DNA of 64,000 nucleotides, from contig NIVC01000032.1 in NCBI GenBank assembly GCA_002269645.1, positions 930,001-994,000 on the forward strand, in the 5' to 3' direction. How positions within the stretch are numbered: the stretch's first letter is position 1; each line of letters starts with the position of its first letter. The stretch comes from Macrostomum lignano. Lineage: Eukaryota. Made by a program: the position numbers and the translations under genes. The notes under the pieces are model-generated. The model did not search any database and was not told the origin of the DNA. It saw only the letters and a program-made list of their open reading frames with translations. Of this stretch, positions 5,009-63,210 are shown one piece after another.

Positions 5009-12868
<7,860 letters not shown>

Positions 12869-12923
12869 CTGGGGAGTTAATTAATAGGTTAGAAAACTGT
12901 AAGTCTTGACAGCCTTAGATCTG

Positions 12924-13600
<677 letters not shown>

Positions 13601-17100: not shown

Positions 17101-17247
17101 TACCGAAGCTGGAAGGACCTCGGTCCACAGGACAGCGATCAAGTTCGCGATCCGACCCTGCTGCGCTACAGGGAGCAGCTCGTTGCTAACGTTCTGCGAG
17201 CCAGGACTGCCCTGGGCCTGCCCCTGCCTATCCATATTTCTGATTGA
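14143..17247 (+). CDS. Type II membrane glycosyltransferase, GT92/DUF23-like
   Basis: Exons 14143-14409 (N-terminal TM), 15317-15618 (VYSAFYD...LMCQLWY), 16133-16361 (FAVCMSP...LELNRLFGANRFFVYN), 16588-17247 (QMAMLQDCVMRA..YEFAVFTDMNEVVVP...SKMIVKP...HRY, stop). GT-AG and phases consistent; motif order matches GT92. Confidence 0.8.
14620..15110. repeat. ~27-31-bp minisatellite (CAGCTGTTAGGTCACTGACCTCCCAGATCCT) in GT92 intron 1
   Basis: Two interleaved unit variants in tandem. Confidence 0.85.
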
Positions 17248-17599
17248 GGTGTGTATAGAGTTGCCATGTCAACAAACCTGAAAAGCTGAAACGGGTGATA
17301 TTCGAGCTCCCGACCTCCCCGTCTGGTCACACAGATTTCTGTCTATGGCTGTAAATTCAATGGATCTCAAAGACTCATGCCTTTAACACAAGGACCCTTT
17401 AATAACATCGTAACAAAGACGTCCTTTGGGTACCCTTACTACTCAAACAAAGCTAGATATGCATGTATAAGGCGTATTCGAGTAGCTCAATACTGACTTG
17501 CTTTTACTGTTTTGTAAAACAATTCTAACTCCATTGTACTCGTACTACGAATTATCAAAAACGCTTATGAATGGCAGCAGTATCTTACGTTTGAGAACT

Positions 17600-18211
<612 letters not shown>

Positions 18212-18219
18212 CTCTTACG

Positions 18220-21200
18220 ACTGTCTGTGTGTTTAGCGGGACCTGAGTTATGTTAATGCGTTACGTGGACCACGCAATTCCGGTTAAAAAATAGAGTCTG
18301 TTTTGACAACGCGAAAGGCTAGCTAGGGTTATCTTTTTGTTAACTTGACGGAATAGCCAGTTCGGGGAAACTGTGGTGGTTTACTAACTACGTTTTGGGG
18401 ACCGGGTTAGGTGGACCGCAAAAAAACAGTTGGTTTAGTTAGACCTCTTTCGTTGTAGAAAATTTATTGCTTTAAACTGTTCTTTTGAACTAATTAAAAC
18501 AGAAATTCTCAAAAAGAACAGATAAAAGGGTTACGACGTCATTTAATGAAAATATCCCAAGTTCAAACCAATTTATTTAGCATTATTAATCGGGTTAATC
18601 GGGTTAAACAAATGTACGATCGCATTAGTTAGTTGCGTCGCGTGAATACAAGAAGGTGAATGAAAATAAAGCATTTTGAAAATAAATACAGAATCATATC
18701 AAATACTAACTGTAAACTCATTAAAACTAATTTAGGTCAAAATGTATGCTTCAAATACATGTTAACAAACGTAAGATTCCATTAGTTAAAAAAGGTCATC
18801 CGAGTACGAGCCTACAAGAAGTTGAAGGGCATTTTTAATAACGACAAAAGTTACTAAAACTGAAATTAAATTGATTTGACTACATCAGTCCTATTATACT
18901 GAATGAGTTGGTGAGCAATCATATGATAAGCCAATCATTTTACCGACTTTCATCTTTTCGTTCACGCAGATGATGGCTTAATCTTCTTATTTTTCTACGA
19001 AATATTCTCCTGGACCTTCCCTGCCTCCGTGGTCCGGGACCGCTTCTGTTATTGATCTGTCATTGCCTCTCTCACGAATTTCAGCTTACTCAGCCATCGA
19101 ATCCGCTTTCGTCAGCTCAGCTCTATGATGAACCTTTCTATATTTCTCGTCAATTAGTGGTTTGAATCTTCTTTTACAGTTCGTTTTAACCTTCATCTCG
19201 GTGAAACGCAGTCAGTCTCGTCGAGCTCAGGCGAACAAAATCCACCACAGGCTCCTACAAAGGTAGAAAATAAAATTAACTGACAATCAAACAGACACAG
19301 AAATCTGTTCCAGTTGTGTCTGTAGGTTATGTGGACCACCTGAGAGCCAGAGCCTCAAACAGACAGAGAAATCTGTTCCAGTTGTGTCTGCAGGTGAGGT
19401 GAACCAACTTCTGAGAGCCAAAGCTCAAACAGACTGAGAGAGCTGCTTCAGTTGTGTCTATAGGTTATGTGGACCACCTAAGAGCCAGAGCCTCAAACAG
19501 ACAGAGAAATCTGTTCGAGTTGTGTCTGTAGGTTAGGTGGACCACCTTCTGAGAGCCAAAGCCTCAAACAGACTGAGAGAGCTGCTTCAGTTGTGTCTGT
19601 AGGTTATGTGGACCACCTAAGAGCCAGAGCCTCAAACAGACAGAGAAATCTGTTTGAGTTGTGTCTGTAGGTTAGGTGGACCAGCTACTCCAAAGCACTT
19701 CTAGGCGATAATCTGAGCCAGGAATCTCCGAGAGCCTCTCGTTACACATCCAGATGTTCTGCCTTGATGCTGGACTAGCTCACTTTCTAGGAATCTGTTC
19801 TGATTGCATTCTAACAAACTGAAGCATTCTCGGCACTAAACTTTCTCGGCGGCTCTAAGAGCCAGAGCCTCAAACAGACAGAAATCTGTTCGAGTTGTGT
19901 CTGTAGGTTAGGTGGACCAGCTACTCCACAGCACTTCTAGGCGATAATCTGAGCCAAAAGTCTCCGAGAGACTTTCGTTACACATCCAGATGTTCTGCCT
20001 TGATGCTGGACTAGCTCACTTTCTAGGAATCTGTTCTGATTGCATTCTAACAAACTGAAGCATTCTCGGCACTAAACTTTCTCGGCGGCTCTGAGAGCCA
20101 GAGCCTCAAACAGACAGAGAAATCTGTTCGAGTTGTGTCTGTAGGCTAGGTGGACCACCTTCTGAGAGCCAAAGCCTCAAACAGACTGAGAGAGCTGCTT
20201 CAGTTGTGTCTGTAGGTTATGTGGACCACCTAGGAGCCAGAGCCTCAAACAGACAGAGAAATCTGTTCGAGTTGTGTCTGTAGGTTAGGTGGACCAGCTA
20301 CTCCAAAGCACTTCTAGGCGATAATCTGAGCCAGGAGTCTCCGAGAGACTTTCGTTACACATCCAGATGTTCTGCCTTGATGCTGGACTAGCTCACTTTC
20401 TAGGAATCTGTTCTGATTGCATTCTAACAAACTGAAGCATTCTCGGCACTAAACTTTCTCGGCGGCTCTAAGAGCCAGAGCCTCAAACAGACAGAGAAAT
20501 CTGTTCGAGTTGTGTCTGTAGGTTAGGTGGACCAGCTACTCCACAGCACTTCTAGGCGATAATCTGAGCCAGGAATCTCCAAGAGCCTCTCGTTACACAT
20601 CCAGATGTTCTACCTTGATGCTGGACTAGCTCACTTTCTAGGAATCTGTTCTGATTGCATTCTAACAAACTGAAGCATTCTCGGCACTAAACTTTCTCGG
20701 CGGCTCTGAGAGCCAGAGCCTCAAACAGACAGAGAAATCTGTTCGAGTTGTGTCTGTAGGTTAGGTGGACCAGCTACTCCACAGCACTTCTAGGCGATAA
20801 TCTGAGCCAGGAATCTCCGAGAGCCTCTCGTTACACATCCAGATGTTCTACCTTGATGCTGGACTAGCTCACTTTCTAGGAATCTGTTCTGATTGCATTC
20901 TGACAAACTGAAGCATTCTCGGCACTAAACTTTCTCGGCGGCTCTGAGAGCCAGAGCCTCAAACAGACAGAGAAATCTGTTCGAGTTGTGTCTGTAGGCT
21001 AGGTGGACCACCTTCTGAGAGCCAAAGCCTCAAACAGACTGAGAGAGCTGCTTCAGTTGTGTCTGTAGGTTATGTGGACCACCTAAGAGCCAGAGCCTCA
21101 AACAGACAGAGAAATCTGTTTGAGTTGTGTCTGTAGGTTAGGTGGACCAGCTACTCCACAGCACTTCTAGGCGATAATCTGAGCCAGGAATCTCCAAGAG

Positions 21201-27200: not shown

Positions 27201-29046
27201 CGAGTTGTGTCTGTAGGTTAGGTGGACCACCTTCTGAGAGCCAAAGCCTCAAACAGACTGAGAGAGCTGATTCAGTTGTGTCTGTAGGTTAGGTGGACCA
27301 GCTTCTCTACAGCAATTGAGTTGCAGGCCTTGCAGCTAGCTACTTTGAGATCATCAAACGAAACTCACTTTTCTGGACTCGGTGTCGACGGATTTGCGAG
27401 CAGACTGATGATTTTCACCAGGCGATGCGGCTTCTTCGATTTCGCAGTGGCTTTTTGCGACGGTGTTTTTTTAGTTTTTATTTTAGGCTTGGCGTCCTTT
27501 TTTGCGGGTCATCATATCTTGGTTGTAGATTACAGTTTTTGGCACAATAAATTTATATATGGATGAAACTTGGAGTAAGGATTAACATTAGACCTATTAA
27601 GTATAAAAAACCGTTCTAATCTATACAATTGCAATCCTTTAGAGTTGTATAGTATGGATTATAAGTACTTTCTTTTAAACTGTCTGTGTCTGGTCTCACT
27701 ACGCCATGGTTTACGTGGACCACCCGCTTAGACATTATATATCCCTCTCTCCACTGTCTTACCTTCAGAACGCTTGCGGGTTTCCTATTGGCTGCGGTCG
27801 GTCCCATTGTTGGGGTGGATCTATCCTCCTAAGTGTTAACCAGCCAATTATAGAAAGGGAGGTCTGTCTGTCTGTCTGTTCCAACCCTATACTCCTGCAC
27901 ATGTGTTTACGTGGACCAAACAGACAGTGAGTGTTAGGCTGACTGTTAATGCGTTCTTAGTTTTACTGGGACCGCAATCAAGTCGACCTTTTGCTAGAGA
28001 GTCAGAGACCCGATCGCTAGCTAAAAGGCCCTTCTTAATTGCGTCCTCTTGATCAAATCTTTTGCATGTACATGTATGAATTGTCCTTTTCAATTAGGTA
28101 AATTGCATCTTCAACTTTGCACTTGAAAGGCTGCAGCTTAGGATCTTCTTCTTCCAAAATTGGAGGAGGATAGAACAGGATATCCCATAGTGTTTAGGAT
28201 AGAATTGGCAAGCACTTAATTCATGAAGTTGCTATTTTCTTCTTGTGTAATGGTAGAGCCTCAGAAATTCGCATTTACACAGTGTGGCTATCAAGGACCA
28301 CTGGGAGTTCTTGAGAAGTCATTGAAGAATACTATTTAAGCTTCACTTAAATATCTTTCTTGTCTCGGAGTCTTTATCGTTTGATCTGGTTCGCGAATTG
28401 GATTTCTTTACGTTGGTGTCTTACTCTGTGAGTCTGTGCTCAGAGTACGATACCGGAATTGCTGGAACTGAGCTAATTAAATGGAGTTTAAAGTTTACTG
28501 TATCAAATTCATTTCGCATACGAGGTTTCAGAATTTTTAATTAACCTGCGTACCGACTTGAATGTCAAAGAACTGAACGCATATTGTTTTAAAGCCAGTA
28601 GCGGTCATAATATGATGCCAACATGGCCCTTTGTTCGTAAGGTAATGATCTGTAAAAAAATCAGTTTTGCATTGAATCTGTGCTTAATAACTGCTATACA
28701 CAAACAGACACAAACAGACACAAACAGACACAAACAGACGATTTTCGAAAAATTTTCTAAAATTTTTCGGTTTACGTGGACCAGACTCGCTCGGTTTAGG
28801 TAGACCAGGCTGGAGGTCCAGCTAAACTGAAATGCAAATAACTTTGGAAAAAACCATGCTAGACATCCCAAAATTGCTTAAGCCTTTCTTGACCCGCCTG
28901 ACATTAATGTGAGATCCTCATCAACGTCTTAACCCCACCAGAGACAAAATTATTTGGTGGTCCACCTAAGTGGTCTACCTACACCGGTTGGTCCAGCTAA
29001 CGAGGCTACTGAACTTCCAAAAAGTCCACGTAAACACACAGACAGT
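18220..29046. mobile_element. Putative non-autonomous DNA transposon (10.8 kb) with 16-bp TIRs, subterminal TTA(C/G)GTGGACC motifs and an internal satellite
   Basis: ACTGTCTGTGTGTTTA at 18220-18235 and its exact reverse complement at 29031-29046. GTGGACC-type motifs cluster inward from both ends. (GACA)n on both sides; no target-site duplication identified. Confidence 0.55.
19288..27305. repeat. Satellite array, 236-238-bp unit (~30 copies) with interspersed ~75-bp sub-units
   Basis: Unit starts measured at 20471, 20709 and 20947 (238-bp period); units highly similar. Confidence 0.95.
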
Positions 29047-29535
<489 letters not shown>

Positions 29536-29909
29536 CAATGTTAGTAATCGAAAAATCGCTAAGCATCATTAAAAGGAACTTACGAAGCCAAGCGATCAAA
29601 CAAAAAAATGTCCAAATCACAGTGATGGATAACTGGATTCCGTTGGAGCACTTCATTTTTGTATATTGTTCATTTACTTGGAGATAATTCTGTCGCTAAA
29701 AATGACCGCACTGGCAGCACGATGCAGAGCAGAAGCGAGGTTGGTCGACACGTAGCAGATTTGACTTGCAGTGTGGAGTAAATCTGTGCGAGCGCTTTAA
29801 TAGCAATAACCTCTGCCCAGCTATCTGCTATGAGCACCCAATGGAATGCCATGTGACAGGAACTTCATCTCATTGGCTTTGGCTGCTGGCTGATGACGTG
29901 GGTGGCTGC

Positions 29910-30680: not shown

Positions 30681-31243
30681 ATGAAAAATTCGGCCTACAA
30701 CTTTTCTGTGAAAAGTAACGAGCTCAAATCTGATTGGGTCCTAAAGATTTCGCTAGAGAACAAGTTGGATTCCTATTGGTCGAAATTAACGCCATTTTGA
30801 GGACTTACAGCAGCCATACCTTGGGACGGTGAATTTTTATAATAATAGCCGGCAGCAAAGTTGACAGACTGCTGCATGGACGCTGAGACAAATTTAATTA
30901 AAACAACACATAAGTTCAGATAAAAAGCACCAAAAATGGACAATCTAAAAGTGATTGGAGCATCCAATTTCAGCAGAGTTCCAAGCGATATCGACAATCT
31001 GAGTCACTGGCTGCTGGTAAGTTGAAAAGGAATTCATTAGAATTTATCAATAAGCGTACGTTAATCTAGTTACGTTAAAGGAACGCTAGTTCAAAAATAA
31101 TTTCCCCCGAATCGATACATCACCCAAGTCCGATCTGTTAAGTGCATCTAAGAAAGTTAATTGATTTCCTCGGATGGATATTGATCCCAAAAGACAGTAC
31201 TTATAAATTTTCTTTATTTTGTGTCTTTCTATACGATTTGCAG

Positions 31244-32512
31244 ACAACGCCGTCAACCCTCCTGTCAACTGTGACCTGCCTCACCTGGTCCTATTTGCAG
31301 TCTGGCAGCTTTATCCTGCTAGCGATATGCCTAGTAACCATTAATCTGATTGTTGTGCTAGGCAATACTTTGGTTGTTCTGGCCGCTTGTACATCGGCTA
31401 AGCTGCAAAACGCGCTGACCAGCACCTTTGTAGTGAGCCTGGCTTTAAGCGACCTTCTACTTGGCGCTGCAGTGCTGCCGTTCTCAACTGTGCACCAGCT
31501 GCTGCTCAAGCACTGGGTGTTCGGCAGCCGATGGTGCCAGATCTGGCTAGCTACCGATGTCTGGACCTGCACAGCCTCCATTCTCAATCTGGTGATTATC
31601 AGTCTCGACCGCTACCTCAGCTTGTGCCATCCGTTGAAGTATCCAAAGTTGATGAATAGACGCCGAGCTCGAGGCATGGTTGCCGGCGTGTGGATTCTGG
31701 CCAGCGCCATCAGCCTGCCCACCCTGCTGGCTGGTTCCGCGTCTAATCAGTACGAGCTAGAAAATGACGCTGACAATGATACATCGGGGGTCACCAGCGA
31801 TAAGCCAACCGGATGTCTTCGCCTGGGTCCAACATGCACCATTGCTCAGAGTGAACGGGGATACATTGTCTATTCAGCGCTTGGTTCGTTCTTCATCCCA
31901 TTTCTAGTGGTGACTTATTTGTACGCTAAGATCTGTACCGTGGTGCATCGCACTTTGCGAGCTGGACGCATGGGAACGGTCACTGTGCAGGCTCGCAGGC
32001 AATACGGAGAGCTCCGGGTGCACAGAGGCGGCGGAGGTGGCAGCGGCGGTGGCGAAGGGCAGACGGGAGCTCCGCTTTTCTCGGCTCGTTACGGTCGGGA
32101 GCTCAAAGCGGCCCGCATGCTGGCGATCATCTGCGTAGCCTTTGTTGGTTGCTGGGCGCCTTTCTTCTCTGTCTACCTGTCCGGTGCAGCCTGTCCGGGC
32201 TGCGTGCCACCCCGAGTTTTCGACTTCTGCTTCTGGCTCGGCTACCTGAACAGCGCTTTAAACCCCTTCATCTACGCGCTTTTCTCCGCTGATTACCGGC
32301 GAGCGTTCAAAGCGTTGATTGTTCGACTGTGGCGGGCCAGACCAGTTCCTGGCTTCTGCTCGAAGCGACAGAGTGGCGGCGGCGGTGTCGTTGGCGGCGA
32401 CATCGGCCGCGGGGCCAGCGGCGGGATCGCCGGCAGCAGCGGAGCGAGCAGGCTGATGATGACCACCCAGCGCGAAGGATTTGGCTCGTTTTCAGCTGAA
32501 ACTCAAGCTTAA
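31244..32512 (+). CDS. Rhodopsin-class biogenic amine GPCR, most like octopamine alpha (OAMB/OctalphaR-type) receptors; main exon
   Basis: 7 TM segments. TM3 WLATDVWTCTASILNL..ISLDRY (Asp3.32), TM5 YIVYSALGSFFIP, ICL3 ELRVHRG, TM6 KAARMLAII..FVGCWAPFF, TM7 FWLGYLNSALNPFIYALFS. Strong acceptor ttctatacgatttgcag at 31243; the start codon must lie in an upstream exon. Confidence 0.88.
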   Translation, partial: TTPSTLLSTVTCLTWSYLQSGSFILLAICLVTINLIVVLGNTLVVLAACTSAKLQNALTSTFVVSLALSDLLLGAAVLPFSTVHQLLLKHWVFGSRWCQIWLATDVWTCTASILNLVIISLDRYLSLCHPLKYPKLMNRRRARGMVAGVWILASAISLPTLLAGSASNQYELENDADNDTSGVTSDKPTGCLRLGPTCTIAQSERGYIVYSALGSFFIPFLVVTYLYAKICTVVHRTLRAGRMGTVTVQARRQYGELRVHRGGGGGSGGGEGQTGAPLFSARYGRELKAARMLAIICVAFVGCWAPFFSVYLSGAACPGCVPPRVFDFCFWLGYLNSALNPFIYALFSADYRRAFKALIVRLWRARPVPGFCSKRQSGGGGVVGGDIGRGASGGIAGSSGASRLMMTTQREGFGSFSAETQA

Positions 32513-35135: not shown

Positions 35136-37817
<2,682 letters not shown>

Positions 37818-48997: not shown

Positions 48998-51900
48998 TTA
49001 ACCTTTGAATACGTCGGGAGCGGAGAACAGGATGGCACAGGTGGACACGATAGTGAAGCAGGAGAACATGATGAGGCACAGCCGGTCCACAACTCTGGCA
49101 GCGAATTTCCATTCGCTTGAGATTTCGTTATCGGCAATATCGTCGGAAATTTTCTTTGTTATAATGCGAAGCTCGTTGAGAACGGCGGCTAGGTCGCCCC
49201 GGGTGCTGCACTGATGGGTTGCAGCGTGCTGCTGCTGCTGCTGGTGATGGCCGTTCGAGGAGGGCGACGGCGCTGAGGCGCCGATGCAGTTTTGAAAATA
49301 GGTCGGTGGTCCGACGCCGCCTCCGCCACGAATGTCGTCCTCCAGGTCCAGCACGTTCGCTAGAAGCGACTTCGATGATCTCTCTCGCAGTTCAAAATTG
49401 CCAGCGCCGCCGCCGACGCCGCTGCTACCGACACCGCAGTATCCGCCGCCGGCGCCGCCGAAACCTCCGCCGAATTCGCGGCTTCTTCTTCGACGCATCG
49501 TCATCGAGGAGTTTCGAAACGATGAAGTTCGAGGCTGCTGGCCGGACGCCTCTCGCGTCTTGGCGGGATTTTGCATGCACAGCACGGTGGCCAAATAGGT
49601 GCAGATCAGCTTTCGCACCTGGGAAAGAGTTTTTTTTTGCTTTTACTTAGATGTGATTATGTCTTAGAACTGTCAGGGGTTCGATTCTCGACCCACTCGG
49701 AACAATTTGTGTCCTTGAGCCAGACACTTGACTTTGAACCCCTGCTTCAGTTCACCCAGCTGTAAAATGGGTGCCAGCATTGGCTGGGGGTAATTGAGGA
49801 TGTGTGGCGACCCGGATCCTTGGACTGAACAGCCGTACGCAGCTTTCAGATGCGCTGCGCAATAGCTGCGGCTGAGCTGTCGGTTGCACATAATCACTTT
49901 TTAGTATAATTAGAACTGTGTATAGCATGCGTACAAATCCATAATTGTGTTTCAAGAGCAGAGTAGATCAAGTCTACCTTAAGACTGACACCTCTTATTT
50001 TTAGTACCTACAATTCTTCTTTGAGATATAGAAGCATGTGCCTTATTGTTGACACTTTTTGGAGTGATAGACACTTTTCTGTAAGTACGAGGGTAGACAA
50101 GCTCTTTCGTAACTGACAGTGATTTCTTGAGACAGACACGTAATGGAGTCTCAATGTCAACCGAAATAGAATCGCTTTTCTATAGAAATCGGATTCTTCT
50201 CGACCGAATTTGTCTATGGTAAGACCCCATTTAGCGCTATGCATTCTCCAGTACAGATTCTACAGTTTAAACTCCAAGATGGGCCAATCCAGCGCGTGAC
50301 CGCAGTGCTAAAGCCCCAGGTTTCAGACCATAGACTGTATAGCTGTTGCTGCTCTAGAGCATTAGCAGCAGCAACAGCTGGTGTCTATGGCCTGACCCCC
50401 CGGGGCTTTCGGGGCCTTGGAGATGGCCACTAAATACAGCTTTTATTTGCAGCCCATTTGAGGGGCTTACGCGCAGTGAATAGAATCCAATATATGTTTG
50501 CCAAAGTAATGGAGCCTTTTGTCTATGGTACAAGGCTGGCACAACGGCATTCCATATCCATTACTTTGGCACACATATCTTGGATTAAATTCAATGCGTG
50601 TTTAAAAATCTATAAATTAGCAAAGTCTGAGAATGACACATCAGGGTATTATAGAATCTGTGTTCTCTAGGCCATACTGAATGCCTTCTTTGACGACCTC
50701 TGGCTCATTTCAAAGAAAAATCCACTCTATAGCCTCCTTCAACTTTAGTTAAAAATGGTAAACGTTTCGGAACATCTTTCTTTTGAGAGCAAGACACATT
50801 ATAATCCTTAGTGAATTGCCTAATATCTAAAGATCAATGCATATACAATATTTTGTGGATTTTATTGATAGTTCGGTTCCTGTCCCAGACGTACCCAGTT
50901 CGGCACAGGGTGCGATTCAGCGTCTCTGTGATGATAGTTGAGCACGATCACCGTGAATACGACTGATAGACTGCACATGATCATGGTGCACGCAAAGTAC
51001 ATGCCTAAAATTGATTTAACAGCAGATTTTTCGTTTAGTTTTTTTAATTCTACAATTGATATTCATGCTAAATAGTTTTTATAAAAATGCTTACTGCATG
51101 TATCACTAAACAGCTTTAAACATTCACCATCTAGAAATGCACATGGAAGCAATCCGCAATCGCAACACAATCCACATGGAAGCAATCTGACATTCAACAA
51201 AAAGCCACATGGAAGCAATTCACTATTTAACAACAATCCACATGGAAGCAATCTGACATTCAACAAAAATCCACATGGAAGCAATCTTACATTCAACAAC
51301 AATCCACATGGAAGCAATCTGACATTCAACAACAATCCACATGGAAGCAATCTGACATTCAACAACAATCCACATGGAAGCAATCTGACATTCAACAAAA
51401 ATCCACATGGAAGCAATCTGACATTCAACAAAAATCCACATGGAAGCAATCTGACATTCAACAAAAATCCACATGGAAGCAATCTGACATTCAACAACAA
51501 TCCACATGGAAGCAATCTGACATTCAACAAAAATCCACATGGAAGCAATCTGACATTCAACAAAAATCCACATGGAAGCAATCTGACATTCAACAAAAAT
51601 CCACATGGAAGCAATCTGACATTCAACAACAATCCACATGGAAGCAATCCGCAATCGCAACGCAATCCACATGGAAGCAATACACTATTCAACAATAATC
51701 CAATTGGAAGAAGCTCTTTATTTCACAACAGTCCACTTGGAAGCAGCCCTTCATTTAACAACAACCCATGTGGAAGCAATTCACTATTTAACAACAATCT
51801 GCATGGAAGCAGCTCTTCATTCCACGTGATTTTCCATTTCAAACATTCTTTAAATTGCCAAACCAATAGTAGTAATAAAACAAATTCGAAATAAAACTCA

Positions 51901-54900
51901 AAACAAAAATGACAAGAAAGGTTATTAATAGTGCATAAACGGTGCCCTCCCATTGTCTCACCAATAACGGGAACCGCATCCGAAGTCGGTGGCATTGCCT
52001 CGGCCACCATCATGAGAAACACGGTCAAGGACAACAGGATAGTAACACCTGTGCTCGCCAATTCGAATGTTGTCCCAGAGCGAAGGTGAGAAACAAAGGA
52101 TATCGAAAATTAACAAAATAAATCGTTGCATTGTATTTGTGCTTTGCAACATTTATCTAAACAAAAATTTACGATTGTCTAGTCATTAATTTTACAACGT
52201 ATTTTGCGCACACCTACACTGTTCTATCGCTAGAAACGATTTATTTTAAAAAATTAAAAAAGTGTGCATGGCTGGTAAGATTGGCAGGCACGGAATGACC
52301 GGATCGTTTTGCCAAAAGTTGATTTTCAAATAAATTAAATAAAACAAATATTAATATAAAAAACGCGTTAAATTTACAGTTAAACAAAATTGACGTTGTT
52401 AGGTACTGGTATAATTAAAAGTTATTAATTATTTTGAAAATGAAAAGTCAGCAAACGATTTAAACAAAATTGTTTTTACTTGCTTTAAAACTGTTAGCTC
52501 ACCAATAAGTGGCACCGCTTCGGAAGTCTGCGGCATTGCGTCGGCCACCAGTAGTTGAAACATTGTTAACGACAACATTATTGTCACTCCTAGAGTTGTC
52601 ATTAAAATGTACTTTTACTGCAAATTATAGATTATAGCAAATTATATAGGCCATGCTACAACAGCTAGTTATGAATGGGCTTATGGTCTACTACAGTTTT
52701 AGGTAAGAACAGTGCGCAGTGCTGGGTAAGTTTTTTGTGAAAATGTTTACTTGAAATTTGTTGATCTGTTTAGAGTCTGTACCATAGAAACTCCACCTGT
52801 TAGACAGAAGTTACACACACCTGTTAGACACAAGCTACACACCTGTTAGACACAAGCTACACACTTGTTAGACACAAGCTACACACACCTGTTAGACACA
52901 AGCTACACACACCTGTTAGACACAAGCTACACACACCTGTTAGACACAAGCTACACACCTGTTAGACACAAGCTACACACCTGTTAGACACAAGCTACAC
53001 ACTTGTTAGACACAAGCTACACACCTGTTAGACACTAGCTACACACCTGTTAGACACAAGCTACACACCTGTTAGACACAAGCTACACACCTTTTAGACA
53101 CAAACTACGTGTACAAACTTGTTAGACACAAGCTACACACGGTTAGACACAAGCTACACACCTGTTAGACACAAGCCACACACCTGTAAGACACAAGCTA
53201 CACACACCTGTTAGACACAAGCTACACACACCTGTTAGACACAAGCTACACACACCTGTTAGACACAAGCTACACACACCTGTTAGACACAAGCTACACA
53301 CACCTGTTAGACACAAGCTACACACACCTGTTAGACACAAGCTACACACACCTGTTAGACACAAGCTACACACACCTGTTAGACACAAGCTACACACCTT
53401 TTAGACACAAACTACGTGTACAAACTTGTTAGACACAAGCTACACACGGTTAGACACAAGCTACACACCTGTTAGACACAAGCCACACACCTGTAAGACA
53501 CAAGCTACACACCTGTTAGACACAAGCTACACACCTGTTAGACACAAGCTACACACCTGTTAGACACAAGCTACACACTCCTGTTAGACACAAGCTACAT
53601 ACCTGTAAGACACAAGCTACACACCTGTTAGACACAAGCTACACACCTGTTAGACACAAGCTACACACATGTTAGACAAAAGCTACACACTCCTGTTAGA
53701 CACAAGCTACACACCTGTTAGACACAAGCAGAACACACCTGTTAGACACAAGCAGAACACACCTGTTAGACACAAGCTACACACTTGTTAGACACAAGCT
53801 ACACACGGTTAGACACAAGCTACACACCTGTTAGACACAAGCTACACACTTGTTAGACACAAGCTACACACGGTTAGACACAAGCTACACACCTGTAAGA
53901 CACAAGCTACACACACCTGTTAGACACAAGCAGAACACACCTGTTAGACACAAGCTACACACCTGTTAGACACAAGCAGAACACACCTGTTAGACACAAG
54001 CTACACACCTGTTAGACACAAGCTACACACCTGTTAGACACAAGCTACACACCTGTAAGACACAAGCTACACACACCTGTTAGACACAAGCTACACACAC
54101 CTGTTAGACACAAGCTACACACCTGTTAGACACAAGCTACACACCTGTTAGACACAAGCTACACACCTGTTAGACACAAGCAGAACACACCTGTTAGACA
54201 CAAGCTACACACCTGTTAGACACAAGCTACAAATCTGTTAGACACAAGCTACACACATGTTAGACACAAGCTACACACCTGTTAGACACAAGCAGAACAC
54301 ACCTGTTAGACACAAGCTAAATATAAGCAGAACCCATAAACACACGTCTCTTGCTACGAGTAAACTTCTTTTAGTTGCAGTTCCAAACTTATACGAGCAG
54401 GTGGCTATGACAAAACTCGTAGCAGGTAGATAATAGAAATGCATGCAACAGAAAGTGCTCAAGCAACAATAAATTCGATTAAATGACAAAAATATCAACT
54501 TTAAACTAAGCTTTCTATTCCGATTGTTACAAATATAAATTATAGATACCTGCTACATTACTCGATGCCAATAGATTTTTTATCGGGTTAAAAACAGCTT
54601 TTGAATTGGACTTTAGAGTAGGACTGTTAGAATAAATCTAAGCAATAGAGGAGATGAATCCATTCAAAGAATACGACAGTCAACCAAGGCAGACAGGCAG
54701 TCATGCCAACAGCCACAATTTCTAAAGTATTCGAAGATATACCAGTAATTTTAAAATCTTGCACTCAATAGCCCTAGCAAGGTGCAATCGTTGAAAAACA
54801 TCAAACTGAAAGGAACGTAAGCCCACCCAGTTGTCTGGAGCGGCGCTCTGATGTGCCAGCGGCCCAGGCTCGATTCCAAGTGCAGTTACATTAATTTGTG

Positions 54901-57900
54901 GCTACATTGTGGCTACATTGACTCTGCTCGTGAAATTAACGCTCAGCTTGAGGCCCGAACCCCAAGGCACAGTGAAGTGTACATGCCTAACGATAAATAA
55001 AGTTAGGGTCGCTGTACACTCCTGTGTGAGTGTGTGCCTGTGCAAATGACTGCGTACGTATCCGCGCGCTTGTGTGCCTGCTCAGGGGAGTCGGCGGAAT
55101 GGGGGCAGTAATGCCTCACGCCGGTTGTGTGACAATGTCGCCTACTTAAAATGCCTCTAATAAAAACGGACGCACCTAAAGAGATTTTCTCGCCAGCATC
55201 GGGCGGCAAGATGAAAGTGAGTAGCGCCATAGACGAGATGAGCACGCATGGAATGATGAGGTTAAAGCCATAGTATAGGGTCCGCCTGCGGATCTTAATT
55301 TGATATCGCAGATCTATGAACGGATGCGGGCAGCAGTCGTAGGTAATGGCGAATCTTTGACAGGGCATCTCTGCAAAGCACAGTCAGAGTTAAACAATTG
55401 CACAGATAATTTGCATAGGGTGTTGCCTTACCGAACATTTTTAAGTGCGCGTTGACGCGTCGTCAATAAGGTTATCCAAGGTGGGTTCTTTTAGAGCAGC
55501 TGGACCAGGAACCAGACGTCAAAAATAATCAAAACAGTTACTTCGTACTGCACGAAAATGAATGGGATATACCGTGCTAATTGTGCTATATATCGATAGA
55601 CAAGCTGCAAACAGATTAAACGTGAAAATTAAAATTTCAACAGTTGTGCTTGTTGAAGACATGCATTAATGTGTGCGCGTATTTGTTGAAGTACACATGA
55701 ATTTCAACTGTTCACTTGGTCAAGACCTTGCCAGAGAATCTTACCAGCCATGCTGCATACTATAGCTTTTTGCAGCCCATTTAGGCTTATACACATTGAA
55801 TTTACTCCAAGACATGTCCACATATAGTAATGGAGCTTTTGTCTATGGTAGCAAGTTTGGCACAGGTCCAACATTCCACTGCACCAATACAGGGTGACGC
55901 CAAGAATACAATCTGCTCAGTTACAACAAAAACAAAATAGCATTTCAGCATGTTCAAAACTTCACAAACAAAAGCTCCATTACTTTGGTAGACATATCTT
56001 GGATTAAATTAAATGCATGTAAGCCCAGATCTGGGCTGCAGAAAGCAATATTAACCATTTTTACATTGCACACTGATCTATGGAATGCGATTCGCCCTCT
56101 TACCGAAGCTGACTTTCTCGCCAGCATCAGGCGGTATGATGAAGCTTAGCAGAGCTAGGCAAGCCAAGAATGAGCATGGCGCTATCAAGTTGAATATGTA
56201 ATAAAGCTTTCTTCGACGGATTTTCATGAAGAATTCCAGATCTATGAATGGATAGGTGCAGCAGTCGTACAGATTACTGTGTCGAATTCCGGGAATCTCT
56301 GCAAGCCAAATGCGGGGAAGTTTTCGCACTTTGTGGACAGATTCTGCTACACCAAAAGTGCATTAGCAATCGGATAAGAAAGTTCGAAAGTTCCTTTCTT
56401 ATACTCGTAGAATTGCTCTTTTTATTGCCAATCGTTCAGATTAACAGGATCTTCTTTTGCGTAAGGAACCGCTGCAGCTAGTTAGCTGGCAAGGCACCTG
56501 GTTAACCCTTATGCTTGGGGTCTCTAGTCCTCTCCTCTGCTCTCCTTTCCTCTCCTCTCCTCTCCTCTCCTCTCCTCTCCTCTCCTCTCCTCTCCTCTCC
56601 TCTCCTCTCCTCTCCTCTCCTCTCCTCTCCACTCCTCTCCACTCCTCTCCTCTCCACTCTGCTCTCCTCTCCTCTCCTCTCTGCTCTCCTCTCTGCTCTC
56701 CTCTCCTCTCCTTTCCTCTCCTCTCCTCTCCTCTCCTCTCCTCTCCTCTCCTCTCCTCTCCTCTCCTCTCCTCTTCTCTAATCTCATCTCCTCCTTCTCA
56801 TCTCCCTTCCTCTCCTCTTTTCTCAATCTCTCCTCTCCTCTCCTCTCCTCTCCTCTCCTCTCCTCTCACCTTCTCTCTTCTAGTGTTTTTCCTCGTCTCC
56901 TTTCCCATATATCCCTTATCTGTTCTCAATTATCTTTCCTCTCTCCCCTGTTCCGGTCCGCAGTCATGCTCTAGGTTCTCTATCTGGCCCTTGAAATGAA
57001 AACGTCAGCTGACTTCTGCCTTAATCAGTGTATATTATGTGTTTAAATTAGTAAATCATCTTTTAAACTGCAAACGGAAATAGCTAAAAATAACAAATAA
57101 TAACAAAAAATCGCTAATTACCGAGGGAGAAATTATGCAATAATTAGTAGTTCGAGTTTTTTCCACAATAATTTAGCTCCGTTTTCTTCAACTAGATTTG
57201 ATCAGCCGTCTAGCATATTGGTTTAATCGTGCTAAACAAACTTTCAACAGTTGGGACAACTTCAAGCTTTCCTTAAATTAATAATTTATTCGTGTTATTG
57301 ACTCCGCGCTCGTTCGATTTGTTTTGCTTTAATGACGGATGATGGATTGATTAACCAAAAGCTCCTCTGACGGGGCCCAGCAGCCTTGTTAGACTTTTGC
57401 TTTAATCCCCCTCCCCAATACCTAGCCTCTCGTGTTCTGTTTAATTATGCAGACTCGACAACTCTGAAGCGAAAAAGCATGTTGGCTGACTGGCAGGGAG
57501 AATTATATGACAGCCTTGCAAGCAGTGTGGCTTTATAGCTGGCGCCACCAGACCTAACTGGGGCAAAAACTGGAAAAGTCCTAATTAGTTTTTAACAAGA
57601 TTTTTCTCGCGGCACTGTTGTAACTGCAAACTGTCCAAACTGTTAGACACCTGTGCAGCAGACTCGACTTGTTAGCACTCTGTCCGGGGCCTCAGTCTGC
57701 TAATAAATTGACGATGTCAGAGAGCCTAGCTGGTCAACATTTAACAACAGATTTGTGAGCGCACCCGGTAGCTAAATTAAATGCTTTCTTTGCTTAGGGT
57801 AATTCATTAAGTAAATTGATATTTGGTCAAACGGTTTTTTCAATGAATTATTCTAAACTATGTACTCAATCCGTAAACTGGACTTTCATATCAATTAGGT

Positions 57901-60900
57901 TAATTAGAAACACACAAGTTAATTTGCAACCCGAGATCGGTTAGTCAAGTAAAAAAAGCAAATGTAACAGAAAAGCAAAATTATCAAACCTTCGAGGTTC
58001 CATTCTCCGCTAGGAATGTAGGTAGAAATGTCTCCAGCCCCATTCACTGAGCAGTTTAACGGGTCGTTCAGACGCTGCTCAATCGTCACCAAGCTCTCAT
58101 TGTTGCACTTGAACCTCAAATCGACTGTGCCGCCGTCATAGGTCCACGAGCCGAATTTCAGTTTGCACACCTGGGTATCAAACGGGAACCAGGTGATGTC
58201 AATCTTGCAGGTTGAACGAAACATTCCAGGCGGTACGTAGGTCATGAGGCCCGTGTGGTCGATGACCACGTTGGTCGGATAGGTTGCATCGAACTTCTCG
58301 TCGGCGCTGTGTGAAAAAACAATGGTAGCAACTTTACAGGAATTTTGCTGGCAAAAGCAACGGCCACTTTAGTATAACAGGAAGCAATCTGGATTTTCAT
58401 ATTAGCTCATATTTCCTTTTTATTTCATCAGCTCAAGGAACTAGTATGCATCGAAATGAAATTTTTATTTCAAATATACTTGACTCAAGAAAGAGCAAAA
58501 CAAAAAGTTCTGCAAATACTACTTGTGAGTATTTAGACCTTTGGGCTTGTGAAATAAAAACAAAACAATATGAAAGCAAAATTTTAAGTACACAGCTATA
58601 TAAAATATTAATAATAATAATTGATTACACCTGCCCTAATAGGCAGATGTGCAACCGACAGCTCAGCCGCAGCTATTGCGCGGCGCATCTGAAGGCTGCG
58701 TACGGCTGTTCAGTCCATGGACTGGGGGGTCGCCACACACAGCCTCAATTACCCCAGCTAATGCTGGCACCCATTTTACAGCTGGGTGAACTGAAGCAAT
58801 GCAGGGCTGAGTGTCTTGCTCTCAAGGACACAAATCGTTCCAGTGGGAATCGAACCCCCGACCTTGGGGTATATAAAATAGAGTAGAATAGCATGCTGAT
58901 GTGCATGCTAATTTAAAAGAATGACAATCTTCACTGCCCAGATCAAATGTAATAATTTATTATCTGATGCAAAAAAATGATTCTCTTCCATCTCCGCAGT
59001 GTGTTGTTTGCAGGAAATCGGCCTCCTGTTATACTACAGTGGTCCTTGAGCAAAAGATGATTATATGACAGTCAAGACAGCCTTTTCAAATTAGCTTACC
59101 TATTGTACAGCAGAATATCCGGTTTCCAGACTCGTTTTGGGTCGATATTAATTTTTGTAACCTGCCCATATTCAGCAGGATCCCATTTAAAATGATAGTC
59201 GACCCAAGTCTGGAAAAGGAATTTAAACAAAATTGTTGAATTGTTAATGCAGGCAACATGCTCGAAATTTCTTTAGAAAAATCCAAAGCTTTGCTTATGT
59301 GTAATTACTCATATGGAAATGCGCTAAAACAACAGTTATATCGGATTCATTAATTTCCATTAAAGTACATGAAAAACGTGAAACAAACCAGTTCTGATAA
59401 TTTGTGCCGAATCTGTAGGCTTAAGTTGTTAGACAGCCAACAGCTGTGCATCTGGCAGTTGGGTCTGGGTCTTCGATTAATAAAGAAATAGACCTCCTCG
59501 ACTTGAACGGTCTTTTCCCGGATGTATATTATAATCCGCAAGTTCACAGAATATTTCTAGACTATAGTTTGTAAAGTTTTTAAACTATATATAGGATATA
59601 GAACTGTTTGCACCAACAGATGCAGGTCAATTTCACAGGAACTCACGGTTTTTGCGTGGAAAAATACAGTAGCGAGGAAGGAAGTTATTACTTTACTAGC
59701 ATTATATTGACAACGCCTCACCTTCTGAAAGTCCTCTCTCCCCTCATCTCTTCCTCTCTCCTCATCTCCTCTCTCCCTTCATCTCTTCCTCTCTCCTCAT
59801 CTCCTCTCTCCCCTCATCTCTTCCTCTCCCCTCAGCTCCTCCCTCCCCTCATCTCCTCTCTCCCCTCATCTCCTCTCTCCCCTCATCTCCTCTCTCCCCT
59901 CATCTCCTCTCTCCCCTCATCTCCTCTCTCCCCTCATCTCCTCTCTCCCCTCAGCTCCTCTCTCCCCTCATCTCCTCTCTCCCCTCATCTCTTCTCTCCC
60001 CTCATCTCCTCTCTCCCCTCAGCTCCTCCCTCCCCTCATCTCCTCTCTCCCCTCATCTCCTCTCTCCCCTCATCTCCTCTCTCCCCTCATCTCCTCTCTC
60101 CCCTCAGCTCCTCTCTCCCCTCATCTCCTCTCTCCCCTCATCTCCTCTCTCCCTTCATCTCTTCCTCTCTCCTCATCTCCTCTCTCCCCTCATCTCTTCC
60201 TCTCTCCTCATCTCCTCTCTCCCTTCATCTCTTCCTCTCTCCTCATCTCCTCTCTCCCCTCATCTCTTCCTCTCTCCTCATCTCCTCTCTCCCCTCATCT
60301 CCTCTCTCCCCTCATCTCCTCTCTCCCCTCATCTCCTCTCTCCCCTCATCTCCTCTCTCCCCTCAGCTCCTCTCTCCCTCATCTCCTCTCTCCCCTCATC
60401 TCTTCTCTCCCCTCATCTCCTCTCTCCCCTCAGCTCCTCCCTCCCCTCATCTCCTCTCTCCCCTCATCTCCTCTCTCCCCTCATCTCCTCTGTCCCCTCA
60501 TCTCCTCTCTCCCCTCATCTCCTCTCTCCCTCATCTCCTCTCTCCCCTCATCTCCTCTCTCCCTTCATCTCTTCCTCTCTCCTCATCTCCTCTCTCCCCT
60601 CATCTCTTCCTCTCTCCTCATCTCCTCTCTCCCTTCATCTCTTCCTCTCTCCTCATCTCCTCTCTCCCCTCATCTCTTCCTCTCTCCTCATCTCCTCTCT
60701 CCCCTCATCTCCTCTCTCCCCTCAGCTCCTCTCTCCCCTCATCTCCTCTCTCCCCTCATCTCCTCTCTCCCCTCATCTCCTCTCTCCCCTCAGCTCCTCT
60801 CTCCCCTCATCTCCTCTCTCCCCTCATCTCTTCTCTCCCCTCATCTCCTCTCTCCCCTCAGCTCCTCCCTCCCCTCATCTCCTCTCTCCCCTCATCTCCT

Positions 60901-61860
60901 CTCTCCCCTCATCTCCTCTCTCCCCTCATCTCCTCTCTCCCCTCATCTCCTCTCTCCCCTCATCTCCTCTCTCCCCTCATCTCCTCTCTCCCCTCATCTC
61001 CTCTCTCCCTTCATCTCTTCCTCTCTCCTCATCTCCTCTCTCCCCTCATCTCCTCTCTCCCCTCATCTCCTCTCTCCCTTCATCTCTTCCTCTCTCCTCA
61101 TCTCCTCTCTCCCCTCATCTCTTCCTCTCTCCTCATCTCCTCTCTCCCCTCATCTCCTCTCTCCCCTCATCTCCTCTCTCCCCTCAGCTCCTCTCTCCCC
61201 TCATCTCCTCTCTCCCCTCATCTCCTCTCTCCCCTCATCTCCTCTCTCCCCTCAGCTCCTCTCTCCCCTCATCTCCTCTCTCCCCTCATCTCTTCTCTCC
61301 CCTCATCTCCTCTCTCCCCTCAGCTCCTCCCTCCCCTCATCTCCTCTCTCCCCTCATCTCCTCTCTCCCCTCATCTCCTCTCTCCCCTCATCTCCTCTCT
61401 CCCCTCATCTCCTCTCTCCCCTCATCTCCTCTCTCCCCTCATCTCCTCTCTCCCCTCAGCTCCTCTCTCCCTCATCTCCTCTCTCCCCTCATCTCCTCTC
61501 TCCCCTCATCTCTTCTCTCCACTTCCTCTCCACCCTCTATTGGCTGTCGTATCAAATGTCTACCGCTATCACTACCTGGTCTTTCCGCCTCTTCCAATTT
61601 ATGTTAAATTAAACTACAGTCGTAATTAATAGTTCCGATAACAACAATGACAATCAATTATTTTGCTAGTACAGACAATGATCTATCATGGCACAACAAG
61701 CAATCAAAAGCGAGATGCCTAAAATTGAAACATGTACAAACTACAAAAGTACAAAAAAATACGTGAAAAAACACATGTTACTGTTTTTGCATCGACTCCA
61801 GCGTAAGGCACTCACCAAATCCAACCAAATGTTAGCAAACAGGATCTGGTTTTTCTCATC
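48998..61860 (-). CDS. alpha7-like nAChR alpha subunit (gene 2) with duplicated exons 7 and 8; exons 1-2 not found in the window
   Basis: Exons (minus): 61860-61816 (45 nt, [15 protein letters not shown]), 59209-59100 (110 nt, [10 protein letters not shown]), 58306-57990 (Cys-loop [18 protein letters not shown]), 7A 56298-56104 or 7B 55370-55176 (195 nt), 8A 52589-52503 or 8B 52048-51962 (87 nt), 51004-50895 (110 nt, TM3), 49618-48998 (TM4, stop). The 45/110/195/87/110 exon sizes match the CHRNA7/Dalpha6 gene structure. Confidence 0.93.
49676..49895 (+). mobile_element. CORE-SINE, copy 2
   Basis: B box GGTTCGATTC, CORE block and 3' tail shared with 58640-58870. Confidence 0.75.
50328..50393. 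mobile_element. Tiny palindromic element bounded by CCATAGAC...GTCTATGG
   Basis: Internal AGCTGTTGCTGCT / AGCAGCAACAGCT stem; the same end motif brackets 38186-38290. Confidence 0.45.
51140..51830. repeat. 33-bp minisatellite (CCACATGGAAGCAATCTGACATTCAACAAAAAT)
   Basis: Tandem copies in the intron between exon 8B and exon 9. Confidence 0.9.
51962..52048 (-). CDS. nAChR gene 2 alternative exon 8B (TM2: [28 protein letters not shown])
   Basis: cacag|GT...ATTG|gtgag; 87 nt, phase 1-1. Confidence 0.9.
52503..52589 (-). CDS. nAChR gene 2 alternative exon 8A (TM2: [28 protein letters not shown])
   Basis: ctctag|GA...ATTG|gtgag; 87 nt, phase 1-1; missed by the ORF track. Confidence 0.88.
52790..54320. 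repeat. 22/24-bp minisatellite (ACACCTGTTAGACACAAGCTAC)
   Basis: Roughly 65 copies in the intron between exons 7B and 8A. Confidence 0.93.
54821..55140 (+). mobile_element. Family-2 tRNA-derived SINE, near full length
   Basis: B-box-like GGCTCGATTCC head; highly similar to 62911-63210. Confidence 0.78.
55176..55370 (-). CDS. nAChR gene 2 alternative exon 7B (loop [11 protein letters not shown] + TM1, GEKISL)
   Basis: tttgcag|AG...TTAG|gtgcg; 195 nt, phase 1-1. Confidence 0.9.
56104..56298 (-). CDS. nAChR gene 2 alternative exon 7A (loop [11 protein letters not shown] + TM1, GEKVSF)
   Basis: cttgcag|AG...TTCG|gtaag; 195 nt, phase 1-1. Confidence 0.88.
56525..56950. repeat. (CTCCT)n and CT-rich simple repeat
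   Basis: Read directly. Confidence 0.9.
58640..58870 (-). mobile_element. CORE-SINE, copy 3
   Basis: Reverse complement of the 1236 and 49676 copies (CCCATTTTACAGCTGGGTGAACTGAAGCA; GAATCGAACCCC). Confidence 0.75.
59725..61530. repeat. CT-rich ~17-bp minisatellite (CTCCTCTCTCCCCTCAT)
   Basis: Read directly; explains the 673-aa S/P/L ORF. Confidence 0.93.
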
Positions 61861-62910
61861 CTAGAAATCAAAGAGTTGAGAGCGAAAAAGCTGCATGGTG
61901 AGAGCTATAAGGTAAAGCAAACTAGATCAAGGATGCCTGGGCTTATTTAACTGTTATGTTGGACTTGTAGAACATTTTCACCCTTTATTCTCTTACCAGA
62001 CAGTTGAATATTGAAATGGAAAAGAAGACTTTAAAAAAATTCAGAAAAAAATCGCAATGTTTTATAACCAAACAAAGCATGTATTGTATAGTGATGCAAG
62101 GTGTGTAAACTAACAAGGATCGATAGAGTCTCAGGTTAGCAGAGCAAGGAAGAATTGTAAAAAACGGGACTACAATACTATAGAATGCTTTTCTAGATAC
62201 ATTTGACCAGCCGATGACCAAAGCTGCAAGGTTAAAAACCTGCGGGAGTTCACTAATGGATAGGTATAGCAGGTTTTTCCCGTGAGTTGCAATCTAATCA
62301 ACTTCATCAGCATCCGCAAGCGCCATTATAGCCTGATATTGCAATCATTTTTGTCTCCATATATGTAAAAAAAGGTTCAACAAAAGTGGGGATTGAAAAG
62401 TGCTCACTTTGTCGTTGCATGCATAGGTAAGGGCGATTTTTGTCCAGTAATTTCTAACCTATGCTCACAAACATTCACTGCAAGCGAGACAAATCAGAAC
62501 GCAGTTTTAAAACAAAAATGCAGACTGTTATTTTTTGGCAAGACAAATGAAATTGGAAATGTTTTTACCAAATACGAAACCACTACCGAGTGTTATAGTA
62601 GAGATTAAAACAAAGCTACGAAATTTGAAAAATATAATCAACCAATGCAATTGCAGTCAGGGCAAAGATGGATTACTGACTGTGTCTAGCCACATGTTGG
62701 TGTAAATTATTTGCAATCTTTCGTCCTGAACAAGAAAAGTGAAAATGTGAGCAGTTATTGCGACATTTTGTTGTTATGAGAATTGTGCAAACACCTGTAA
62801 AACACACATAAGCTTGGAAAAAGCTTAGAGCACTCCAGTAATGCCTGTATTTGCTAACAACAAGAACTATCAAGTTTATCAATTAGGCTACCCGAGACAG
62901 CAAGCAATCA

Positions 62911-63210
62911 AGCAAAGCAGTGGTCCAGCGCGGCGCTCTGATGTGCCAGTGGCCCAGGCTCGATTCCAAGTGCAGTTACATTAATTTGTGGCTACATTGG
63001 AATCTCTGCTCGTGCAATTAACGCCCAGCTTGAGGCCCAACCCCCCAAGGCACAGTGAAGTGTACATGCCTAACGATAAATAAAGTTAGGGCCGCTGTAC
63101 ACTCCTGTGTGAGTGTGTGCCTGTGCAAATGACTGCGTACGTATCAGCGCGCTTGTGTGCCTGCTCAGGGGAGTCGGCGGAATGGGGGCCTCTCGCCGGT
63201 TGTGCGACAA
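62911..63210 (+). mobile_element. Family-2 tRNA-derived SINE, near full length
   Basis: TGGTCCAGCGCGG / GGCTCGATTCC head plus the shared body. Confidence 0.78.

Follow-up and report, generated by a model that had tools for sequence, protein, structure and literature searches.

We analysed a 64,000-nucleotide window of the genome of the flatworm Macrostomum lignano (assembly GCA_002269645.1, contig NIVC01000032.1, positions 930,001 to 994,000 of the forward strand; unless another locus is named, coordinates refer to this window, its whole stretch of DNA). The minus strand carries a gene that its sequence identifies as an alpha-type subunit of the alpha7 clade of nicotinic acetylcholine receptors (nAChRs). 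Exons 3, 7 and 8 of this gene, the last two encoding the ligand-binding loop C with transmembrane segment 1 (TM1) and the pore segment TM2, are each present as two tandem copies. We consider it likely that these pairs are spliced in a mutually exclusive manner, with one copy taken from each of the three pairs, and that the gene can thereby make up to eight different subunits.

Exon borders were read by translating four candidate stretches, and the gene model was obtained by tblastn with homologues, taken from two protein searches, together with inspection of the borders. Exons 3 to 10 lie inside the window. A search of the window for exons 1 and 2 did not find them, and we place them beyond position 64000. 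In order of transcription, the features of the gene are:

62681-62725, minus strand: exon 3A, 45 nt, phase 0-0; encodes DERLQIIYTNMWLDT; the alternative copy of exon 3
61816-61860, minus strand: exon 3B, 45 nt; the generic form of exon 3
59100-59209, minus strand: exon 4, 110 nt; constitutive; loop D and loop A region
57990-58306, minus strand: exon 5/6 (fused), 317 nt; Cys-loop (C-x13-C), loop B and loop F
56104-56298, minus strand: exon 7A, 195 nt, phase 1-1; loop C (YDCC), pre-M1, TM1 and the M1-M2 linker to GEKVSF-G
55371-56103, minus strand: intron 7A-7B, 733 nt; holds a palindromic element resembling a miniature inverted-repeat transposable element
55176-55370, minus strand: exon 7B, 195 nt, phase 1-1; loop C (YDCC), TM1 and GEKISL-G
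52503-52589, minus strand: exon 8A, 87 nt, phase 1-1; TM2
52049-52502, minus strand: intron 8A-8B, 454 nt
51962-52048, minus strand: exon 8B, 87 nt, phase 1-1; TM2; the generic form, near vertebrate alpha7
50895-51004, minus strand: exon 9, 110 nt; TM3; constitutive
48998-49618, minus strand: exon 10, 621 nt including the stop codon; intracellular loop, MA helix and TM4

All four copies of exons 7 and 8 are open, preceded by AG and followed by GT, and are entered and left in phase 1. An earlier reading of this DNA, made from the sequence alone, had described two homologous 195-nt exons and two homologous 87-nt exons in the order 7A-7B-8A-8B with exactly these properties. That description holds to the base, and the limits it gave, 51962 and 56298, coincide with the 3′ end of 8B and the 5′ end of 7A on the minus strand. 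The third pair had been overlooked: when the peptide of exon 3B is used in a BLOSUM scan, exon 3A emerges (score 51/80; borders ttcag and gtcagt), and its presence raises the proposed ceiling of four subunits to eight. In each pair the copies are equal in length (45/45, 195/195 and 87/87 nt) and each copy has its own AG...GT. Whichever copy of each pair is taken, the frame stays uninterrupted: each of the eight combinations reads through 494 residues up to the stop codon.

The copies have diverged considerably. Exons 7A and 7B are 62% identical in nucleotides and 59% identical in amino acids, the corresponding values for 8A and 8B being 75% and 68%, and the differences are enriched at third codon positions (36 of 64 codons in the exon-7 pair and 14 of 28 in the exon-8 pair). 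Chance is excluded as an explanation of the copies because every one of them, taken alone, matches nAChR proteins by tblastn, with E values between ~1e-23 and 1e-28 for 7A and 7B and between ~1e-10 and 1e-12 for 8A and 8B. Exon 7B, the generic copy of exon 7, is 66% identical to spider alpha7; 7A is the divergent copy.

Several features support the assignment to the alpha7 clade. The Pfam domains Neur_chan_LBD and Neur_chan_memb are both found, scoring 173-183 bits for the all-A and all-B isoforms alike, and the top PDB match is human alpha7 (E 1.2e-111), in agreement with the alpha7-like identity proposed earlier; the top named protein matches are alpha7 and acr-16-like proteins. The ligand-binding domain contains a Cys-loop, with two cysteines 13 residues apart in exon 5/6. 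Both 7A and 7B encode the vicinal cysteine pair of loop C (YDCC) and, ahead of TM2, the sequence PPDAGEK, in which GEK supplies the -1′ glutamate as in cation channels. The earlier allocation of loop C and TM1 to exon 7 and of TM2 to exon 8 is thus correct, and the predicted product is an acetylcholine-gated cation channel. Relative to human alpha7, exon 5/6 carries an insertion in its loop F part (~58030-58110), ~25 residues long and including two cysteines. This insertion is flatworm-specific: it is common to the M. lignano paralogs and has a shorter version in Opisthorchis.

M. lignano possesses several paralogs of the window gene. One paralog locus (L001) and its near-duplicate (L007) have the order 7A-7B-8A-8B, as in the window, and L007 also has two copies of exon 3 with AG/GT borders, the second copy lying in the same upstream position as 3A. 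Another paralog, L002 (NIVC01004712.1; model P0124), contains only 7B (13387-13578) and 8A (14241-14330) and has lost 7A and 8B, which suggests that the alternatives have been resolved into a fixed gene. Comparison of the window gene with L001 gives the following proportions of synonymous (pS) and non-synonymous (pN) change and ratios of the two rates (omega, dN/dS):

Exon 7A: pS 0.82, pN 0.17; omega not computable (pS saturated)
Exon 7B: pS 0.62, pN 0.14; omega 0.12
Exon 8A: pS 0.69, pN 0.03; omega 0.018
Exon 8B: pS 0.91, pN 0.04; omega not computable (pS saturated)

Because synonymous change is near saturation and non-synonymous change is low, 7A, 7B, 8A and 8B are all under purifying selection between the paralogs, and none of them is dead on that time scale. 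The sequence-only reading had proposed conservation in related genomes and dN/dS as checks on the duplicates; pN lies far below pS for all four copies, and the 7A/7B pair is conserved in Capitella, Owenia and Lineus.

We compared orthologous loci from Capitella (L003), the nemertean Lineus longissimus (L004) and Owenia (L005). In all three a 7A-type exon lies upstream of a 7B-type exon, with AG/GT borders throughout; the 7A type reads RRRK-LY... and ends in GEK[VL]-x-[FC], and the 7B type ends in GEKISL. In a bootstrapped neighbour-joining tree of the 64-residue exon peptides, the 7A copies of Macrostomum, Lineus and Capitella form one clade together with two metagenomic sequences (62% bootstrap), the Macrostomum 7A copies by themselves group with 92% bootstrap, and the 7B copies fall with the generic bilaterian exon 7. 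This clade and the conserved 7A-7B order point to a single exon-7 duplication before the split of flatworms, annelids and nemerteans. The exon-7 pair in Spiralia is ancient and widespread and is not peculiar to the window gene.

The most informative comparison comes from Lineus. RefSeq isoforms X1, X2, X3, X4 and X6 are each 480 residues long and differ solely in their copy of exon 3, 4 or 7. Each contains exactly one exon-7 copy, which is 7A in X3 and X6 and 7B in X1, X2 and X4. A second exon 3 is present in both Capitella and Lineus, in the same upstream position as 3A. Pairs of exon 3 are known in Capitella, Lineus, ticks and insects, and the 15 residues of this exon are too few for an orthology call. 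Lineus additionally has a pair of exon 4 copies (77553-77657 and 77715-77819 of L004, ~57 nt apart), of which RefSeq X4 takes the alternative one.

Two exon-7-like segments in tandem occur in many predicted proteins of other protostomes, including arthropod alpha7-type genes with two exon-7 copies in predictions from Schistocerca, Zootermopsis, Timema, Nilaparvata, Amphibalanus and Trinorchestia. In the exon-7 tree these arthropod copies fall into clades of their own, and the arthropod duplication is therefore probably a separate event. In the Opisthorchis locus (L006), exon 7 is present twice (52610-52801 and 53644-53835, ~1 kb apart) with identical translation, which reflects either a very recent duplication or an assembly artefact.

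Exon 8 has a different distribution. In a sensitive scan, Capitella, Lineus and Owenia each show one exon 8, which is of the 8B type, and the liver fluke Opisthorchis likewise shows one, of the 8A type; all the parasitic-flatworm proteins recovered are of the 8A type. Among the loci compared, the exon-8 pair is seen in Macrostomum only. The exon-8 duplication looks specific to the flatworm lineage and younger than that of exon 7, and it is probably independent of the insect one because the annelid and nemertean orthologs have one exon 8. The sharing of 7A/7B with annelids and a nemertean that have a single exon 8 also bears out the earlier proposal, based on exon order, that exons 7 and 8 were duplicated separately. 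Exon 8A and one insect alpha7-type exon-8 variant have in common the motif AD-x-[LM]PQTSEA-x-PL, where 28 residues cannot separate convergence from shared ancestry.

The proteins closest to the product of the window gene are from M. lignano itself, a free-living flatworm, and public gene models give some indication of copy usage in this species. P0241 (UniRef100_A0A1I8HTB9) matches the window at 100% identity across exons 4, 5/6, 7A, 8B, 9 and parts of 10, and P0122 is a variant of the window gene with ~98% identity. Both models splice 7A straight to 8B, leaving out 7B and 8A, and as a guide to real usage this choice is suggestive only. The NCBI models P0128 and P0150, from paralog L001, splice 7B to 8A. 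The paralog models P0124 and P0150 contain an exon 3 that does not differ from 3B. A protein search with a 200-residue query (exons 5/6, 7B and 8B) returned zero Macrostomum fragments, and one with a full-length query returned only ten M. lignano clusters.

In the mechanism that we propose, each mRNA would take one of 3A/3B, one of 7A/7B and one of 8A/8B. The choice of exon 3 would alter the N-terminal beta-strand region, that of exon 7 the surroundings of YDCC, most of TM1 and pore positions 1′ and 3′, and that of exon 8 the pore positions of TM2. One gene could in this way tune agonist pharmacology, gating and ion permeation in modules. We infer exclusive choice in M. lignano, the production of all combinations and the functional consequences of copy choice. 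Exclusive choice has indirect support from the single-copy models of this gene and of a paralog, from the Lineus isoforms and from the purifying selection on all four copies of exons 7 and 8.

The residues that would be exchanged can be placed on the M2 numbering, in which the glutamate of GEK is -1′ and alpha7 has Leu at 9′, Val at 13′, Leu at 16′ and 17′, and Glu at 20′. Going from 7B to 7A, position 1′ changes from I to V and 3′ from L to F, and most of TM1, the residue after the RRR motif and the residues flanking YDCC also differ. Going from 8B to 8A, the changes are L to M at 8′, V to M at 13′, L to Q at 15′, M to L at 16′ and 17′, and E to D at 20′, with three further differences just past M2. 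The -1′ glutamate and the outer-ring glutamate have been named as determinants of Ca2+ permeability and conductance in work on Tribolium (PMC2064938).

Taking exon usage and exon history together, we are evenly divided over a wider reading. Under it, a 7A/7B splice module more than 500 million years old would be common to flatworms, annelids and nemerteans, and the TM2 pair would have been added later in the flatworm lineage, allowing up to eight subunits that mix binding-site, TM1 and pore variants. The paralogs with only 7B and 8A and the parasitic flatworms would then represent modules that have been resolved into fixed genes.

A number of observations weigh against exclusive choice. Double inclusion and double skipping both preserve the frame, and the mRNA is thus not policed by frame. 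Models P0241 and P0122 start at exon 4 and drop a stretch of exon 10 that is conserved in the paralogs, and the 7A+8B choice of P0241 may not be transcript-based. The M. lignano predictions P0121, P0123, P0125 and P0126 string both exon-7 copies in tandem, and the existence of such models means that annotation alone cannot settle exclusivity. Because translated intron sits in them (for example in P0123 and P0125), we judge the tandem-copy M. lignano models to be ab initio artefacts, the usual failure of predictors on exons of this kind. In arthropods, all the Amphibalanus RefSeq isoforms (P0131 and P0257-P0260) contain both exon-7 copies while swapping their exon-8 copies, and the Schistocerca RefSeq models P0137 and P0141 likewise have both exon-7 copies in tandem with exon-8 copies swapped; these are probably over-inclusive models, which would encode an extra TM1. 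A scan of the introns for RNA pairing, set out after the alternatives below, must be added to these points: no docking or selector pairing rose above expectation.

Of the alternatives to free choice of one copy per pair, the one that we take most seriously, while still thinking it rather unlikely, is that the choices are linked. Only certain pairings would then be made, such as 7A with 8B and 7B with 8A, and the gene would produce two or three subunits, not four or eight. Packing of TM1 against TM2 inside one subunit is established structural knowledge, and the sole pairings in the single-copy models are indeed 7A+8B (P0241, P0122) and 7B+8A (P0128, P0150, P0124), the second of which is fixed in paralog L002 and in parasitic flatworms. 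However, these models are few, come from different paralogs and are in some cases of doubtful quality. Moreover, the annelid and nemertean orthologs pair either 7A or 7B with a single 8B-type exon, and therefore both 7A+8B and 7B+8B are viable there.

We think it improbable that each pair has a relic copy, for example 7A and 8A in the window gene, that splicing no longer brings into the mRNA. Exon 7A evolves faster, the polypyrimidine tracts at 8A and 8B are weak, and paralog L002 has truly lost 7A and 8B, but open frames and AG/GT sites have been kept in all four copies, which combine saturated synonymous with low non-synonymous change between paralogs. In addition, 7A is used in the public model of the window gene, and parasitic flatworms have no other form than 8A, which models of paralogs also use. 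Still less probable is the usual inclusion of both copies, giving a protein with a doubled loop C/TM1, a doubled TM2 or both. As the sequence-only reading had pointed out, such inclusion would keep the frame and double a TM helix, 195 and 87 both being divisible by 3; both copies are present in several predictions, and tick and silkworm alpha6 transcripts with 3a and 3b together exist. Against this, an additional TM1 or TM2 would invert the topology of all downstream parts, the tick 3a+3b form is non-functional in oocytes (PMC13578988), each Lineus RefSeq isoform has a single exon-7 copy, and the over-inclusive M. lignano models also contain translated intron, as in P0123 and P0125, which marks them as predictor artefacts. 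Finally, the M. lignano genome is repeat-rich with many near-identical paralogs, and the Opisthorchis exon-7 doublet with its identical translation may itself be an artefact, but we give almost no credence to the idea that the duplicates in the window arose from merged haplotypes or collapsed paralogs. Nucleotide identity between the copies is only 62% and 75%, their order is repeated on independent paralog contigs, and the exon-7 order recurs in three species of two other phyla, in line with the earlier opinion that an assembly artefact was unlikely.

How exclusive choice of one copy per pair would be enforced can be narrowed down from the sequence. The introns between copies measure 733 nt (7A-7B), 454 nt (8A-8B) and 820 nt (3A-3B), lengths that rule out steric exclusion; elsewhere such introns are short, at ~70 nt between 7A and 7B in Owenia and ~57 nt between exons 4a and 4b in Lineus. 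Incompatibility between U2 and U12 splice sites is ruled out because every donor is an ordinary U2-type GT, and frame shift followed by nonsense-mediated decay because all the duplicated exon lengths are multiples of 3. The candidates that therefore remain are RNA pairing, trans-acting splicing factors, or simple loss of the non-functional products of double inclusion.

We scanned for pairing with RNAduplex, testing successive 30-nt windows of introns 7A-7B and 8A-8B against the introns on either side, and the null result given above allows for the ~140 windows used. The best duplex (-34.3 kcal/mol, z -3.4 relative to shuffles) is the best of those ~140 windows and lies in a transposon-like palindromic element, and its second partner is at chance level (z -0.07). 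Given the number of windows, the palindromic element and the chance-level second partner, we do not count this hit as evidence of a docking or selector system. The introns are not alignable between paralogs by blastn, which aligns the exons and one ~240-bp element that is probably a transposon.

The intron between 7B and 8A contains a minisatellite (52794-54319) of ~67 copies of a 22-nt unit, which reads TGTAGCTTGTGTCTAACAGGTG on the transcribed strand and comprises a branch-point-like CTAAC followed by AG and GT. As this unit resembles splice signals, dozens of look-alikes stand between the exon-7 and exon-8 clusters. A 75-nt inverted repeat with 96% complementarity (49817-49891 and 58647-58721) has its two arms in introns 9 and 4, on either side of exons 5/6 to 9. 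It has a relative in intron 4 of paralog L002 (12235-12470) and probably belongs to a transposon family; inverted repeat pairs can favour back-splicing.

The introns of the gene are otherwise rich in tandem arrays, among them a 33-nt unit repeated 20 times in intron 8B-9 (51135-51811), (TCCTC)n in intron 6-7A (56528-56867) and a 17-nt unit repeated 105 times in intron 3B-4 (59732-61520), the last of which accounts for the extreme GC skew of that segment. Direct copies of a ~280-bp interspersed element, 94-99% identical, are found in intron 7B-8A (54828-55106) and upstream of 3A (62918-63189).

Elsewhere in the window there is a second alpha-type nAChR gene, distinct from the first and also on the minus strand, ~36 kb downstream of it (5057-12887). 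One of its exons encodes the Cys-loop, loop C reads YYPCC, and a single exon encodes both TM1 and TM2; all its exons are single-copy with other exon borders, and its top matches are a rotifer protein and unnamed metagenome (ENA) proteins. At 31142-32512 on the plus strand, in the stretch that separates this gene from the alpha7-clade gene, an uninterrupted open reading frame (ORF) of 456 residues matches the rhodopsin-family G-protein-coupled receptor domain 7tm_1 (224 bits) and contains DRY and NPxxY motifs, and it looks like an intronless aminergic-type receptor. A further ORF (16447-17247, plus strand) matches glycosyltransferase family 92 (49 bits). Long microsatellites of the (GTCT)n type at ~7900-8560, 17565-18246, 28954-29656 and 36942-37200 produce spurious ORFs reading QTDRQTDR... 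or LSVCLSVC.... Scans of the window for tRNAs and with Rfam found nothing.

Insect alpha6 is a textbook case of receptor diversity generated by mutually exclusive exons, which also bear on spinosad resistance. The M. lignano gene would extend this strategy to a flatworm and add a module for the joint exchange of the agonist-binding loop C and TM1, a region that contributes to allosteric-modulator sites in alpha7. The occurrence of 7A/7B in three spiralian phyla would provide a natural set of chimeras for studying the co-evolution of loop C, TM1 and TM2, and M. lignano is amenable to transgenesis, making isoform-specific roles testable. The 8A-only pore of parasitic flatworms marks residues that are unlike those of host alpha7 and may be of pharmacological interest. 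A practical point concerns annotation: current gene models of M. lignano, arthropods and annelids mishandle the exon pairs by including both copies.

Among known systems, human CHRNA7 is the closest relative with a solved structure. We take its exons 3, 4, 7, 8 and 9 to be 45, 110, 195, 87 and 110 nt long, sizes that match M. lignano. By contrast, the human exons are single-copy and are not known to undergo mutually exclusive splicing, and the human gene is without the flatworm loop-F insertion. The Lineus gene (XP_064652926 and others) is similar in having a 7A-type exon (RRRK..., GEKVSF) upstream of a 7B-type exon, an exon 3 pair and isoforms of equal length, but it has a single exon 8 and an extra exon 4 pair, and it is known from automated annotation, with no publication found. 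Arthropod alpha7-type genes resemble the window gene in having tandem loop C/TM1 exons followed by multiple TM2 exons, whereas the RefSeq models examined there hold both exon-7 copies together. In a literature search that left most subscription journals outside its reach, neither a duplicated loop C/TM1 exon in an alpha7-clade gene nor the splicing of flatworm nAChRs turned out to be described. The exon-7 pair is visible in public automated annotation, through the Lineus isoforms, and is undescribed as far as we found. The 'alternative exon 7' of silkworm alpha8 is a TM2/TM3 exon of a different subunit.

The tick Ixodes ricinus provides an alpha7-clade gene outside the insects with an exon 3 pair. 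Its alpha6 has exons 3a and 3b and is expressed as 3a+3b or 3b-alone variants (PMC13578988), and unlike the M. lignano gene it has no reported alternatives at exon 7 or 8. The closest published parallel is insect alpha6, whose mutually exclusive exons 3a/3b and 8a/8b/8c predate the radiation of the insect orders (PMC1919356, PMC2064938); the same papers document the Dalpha6 exons that the sequence-only reading had cited as established. Both genes belong to the alpha5/6/7 clade, in both the 45-nt exon 3 and the 87-nt TM2 exon are duplicated in tandem, and in both the variable TM2 residues include the 20′ glutamate. They differ in that M. lignano has doubled exon 7 as well, for which we found no report in alpha6, and in that M. 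lignano has two copies of exon 8 where insects have three.

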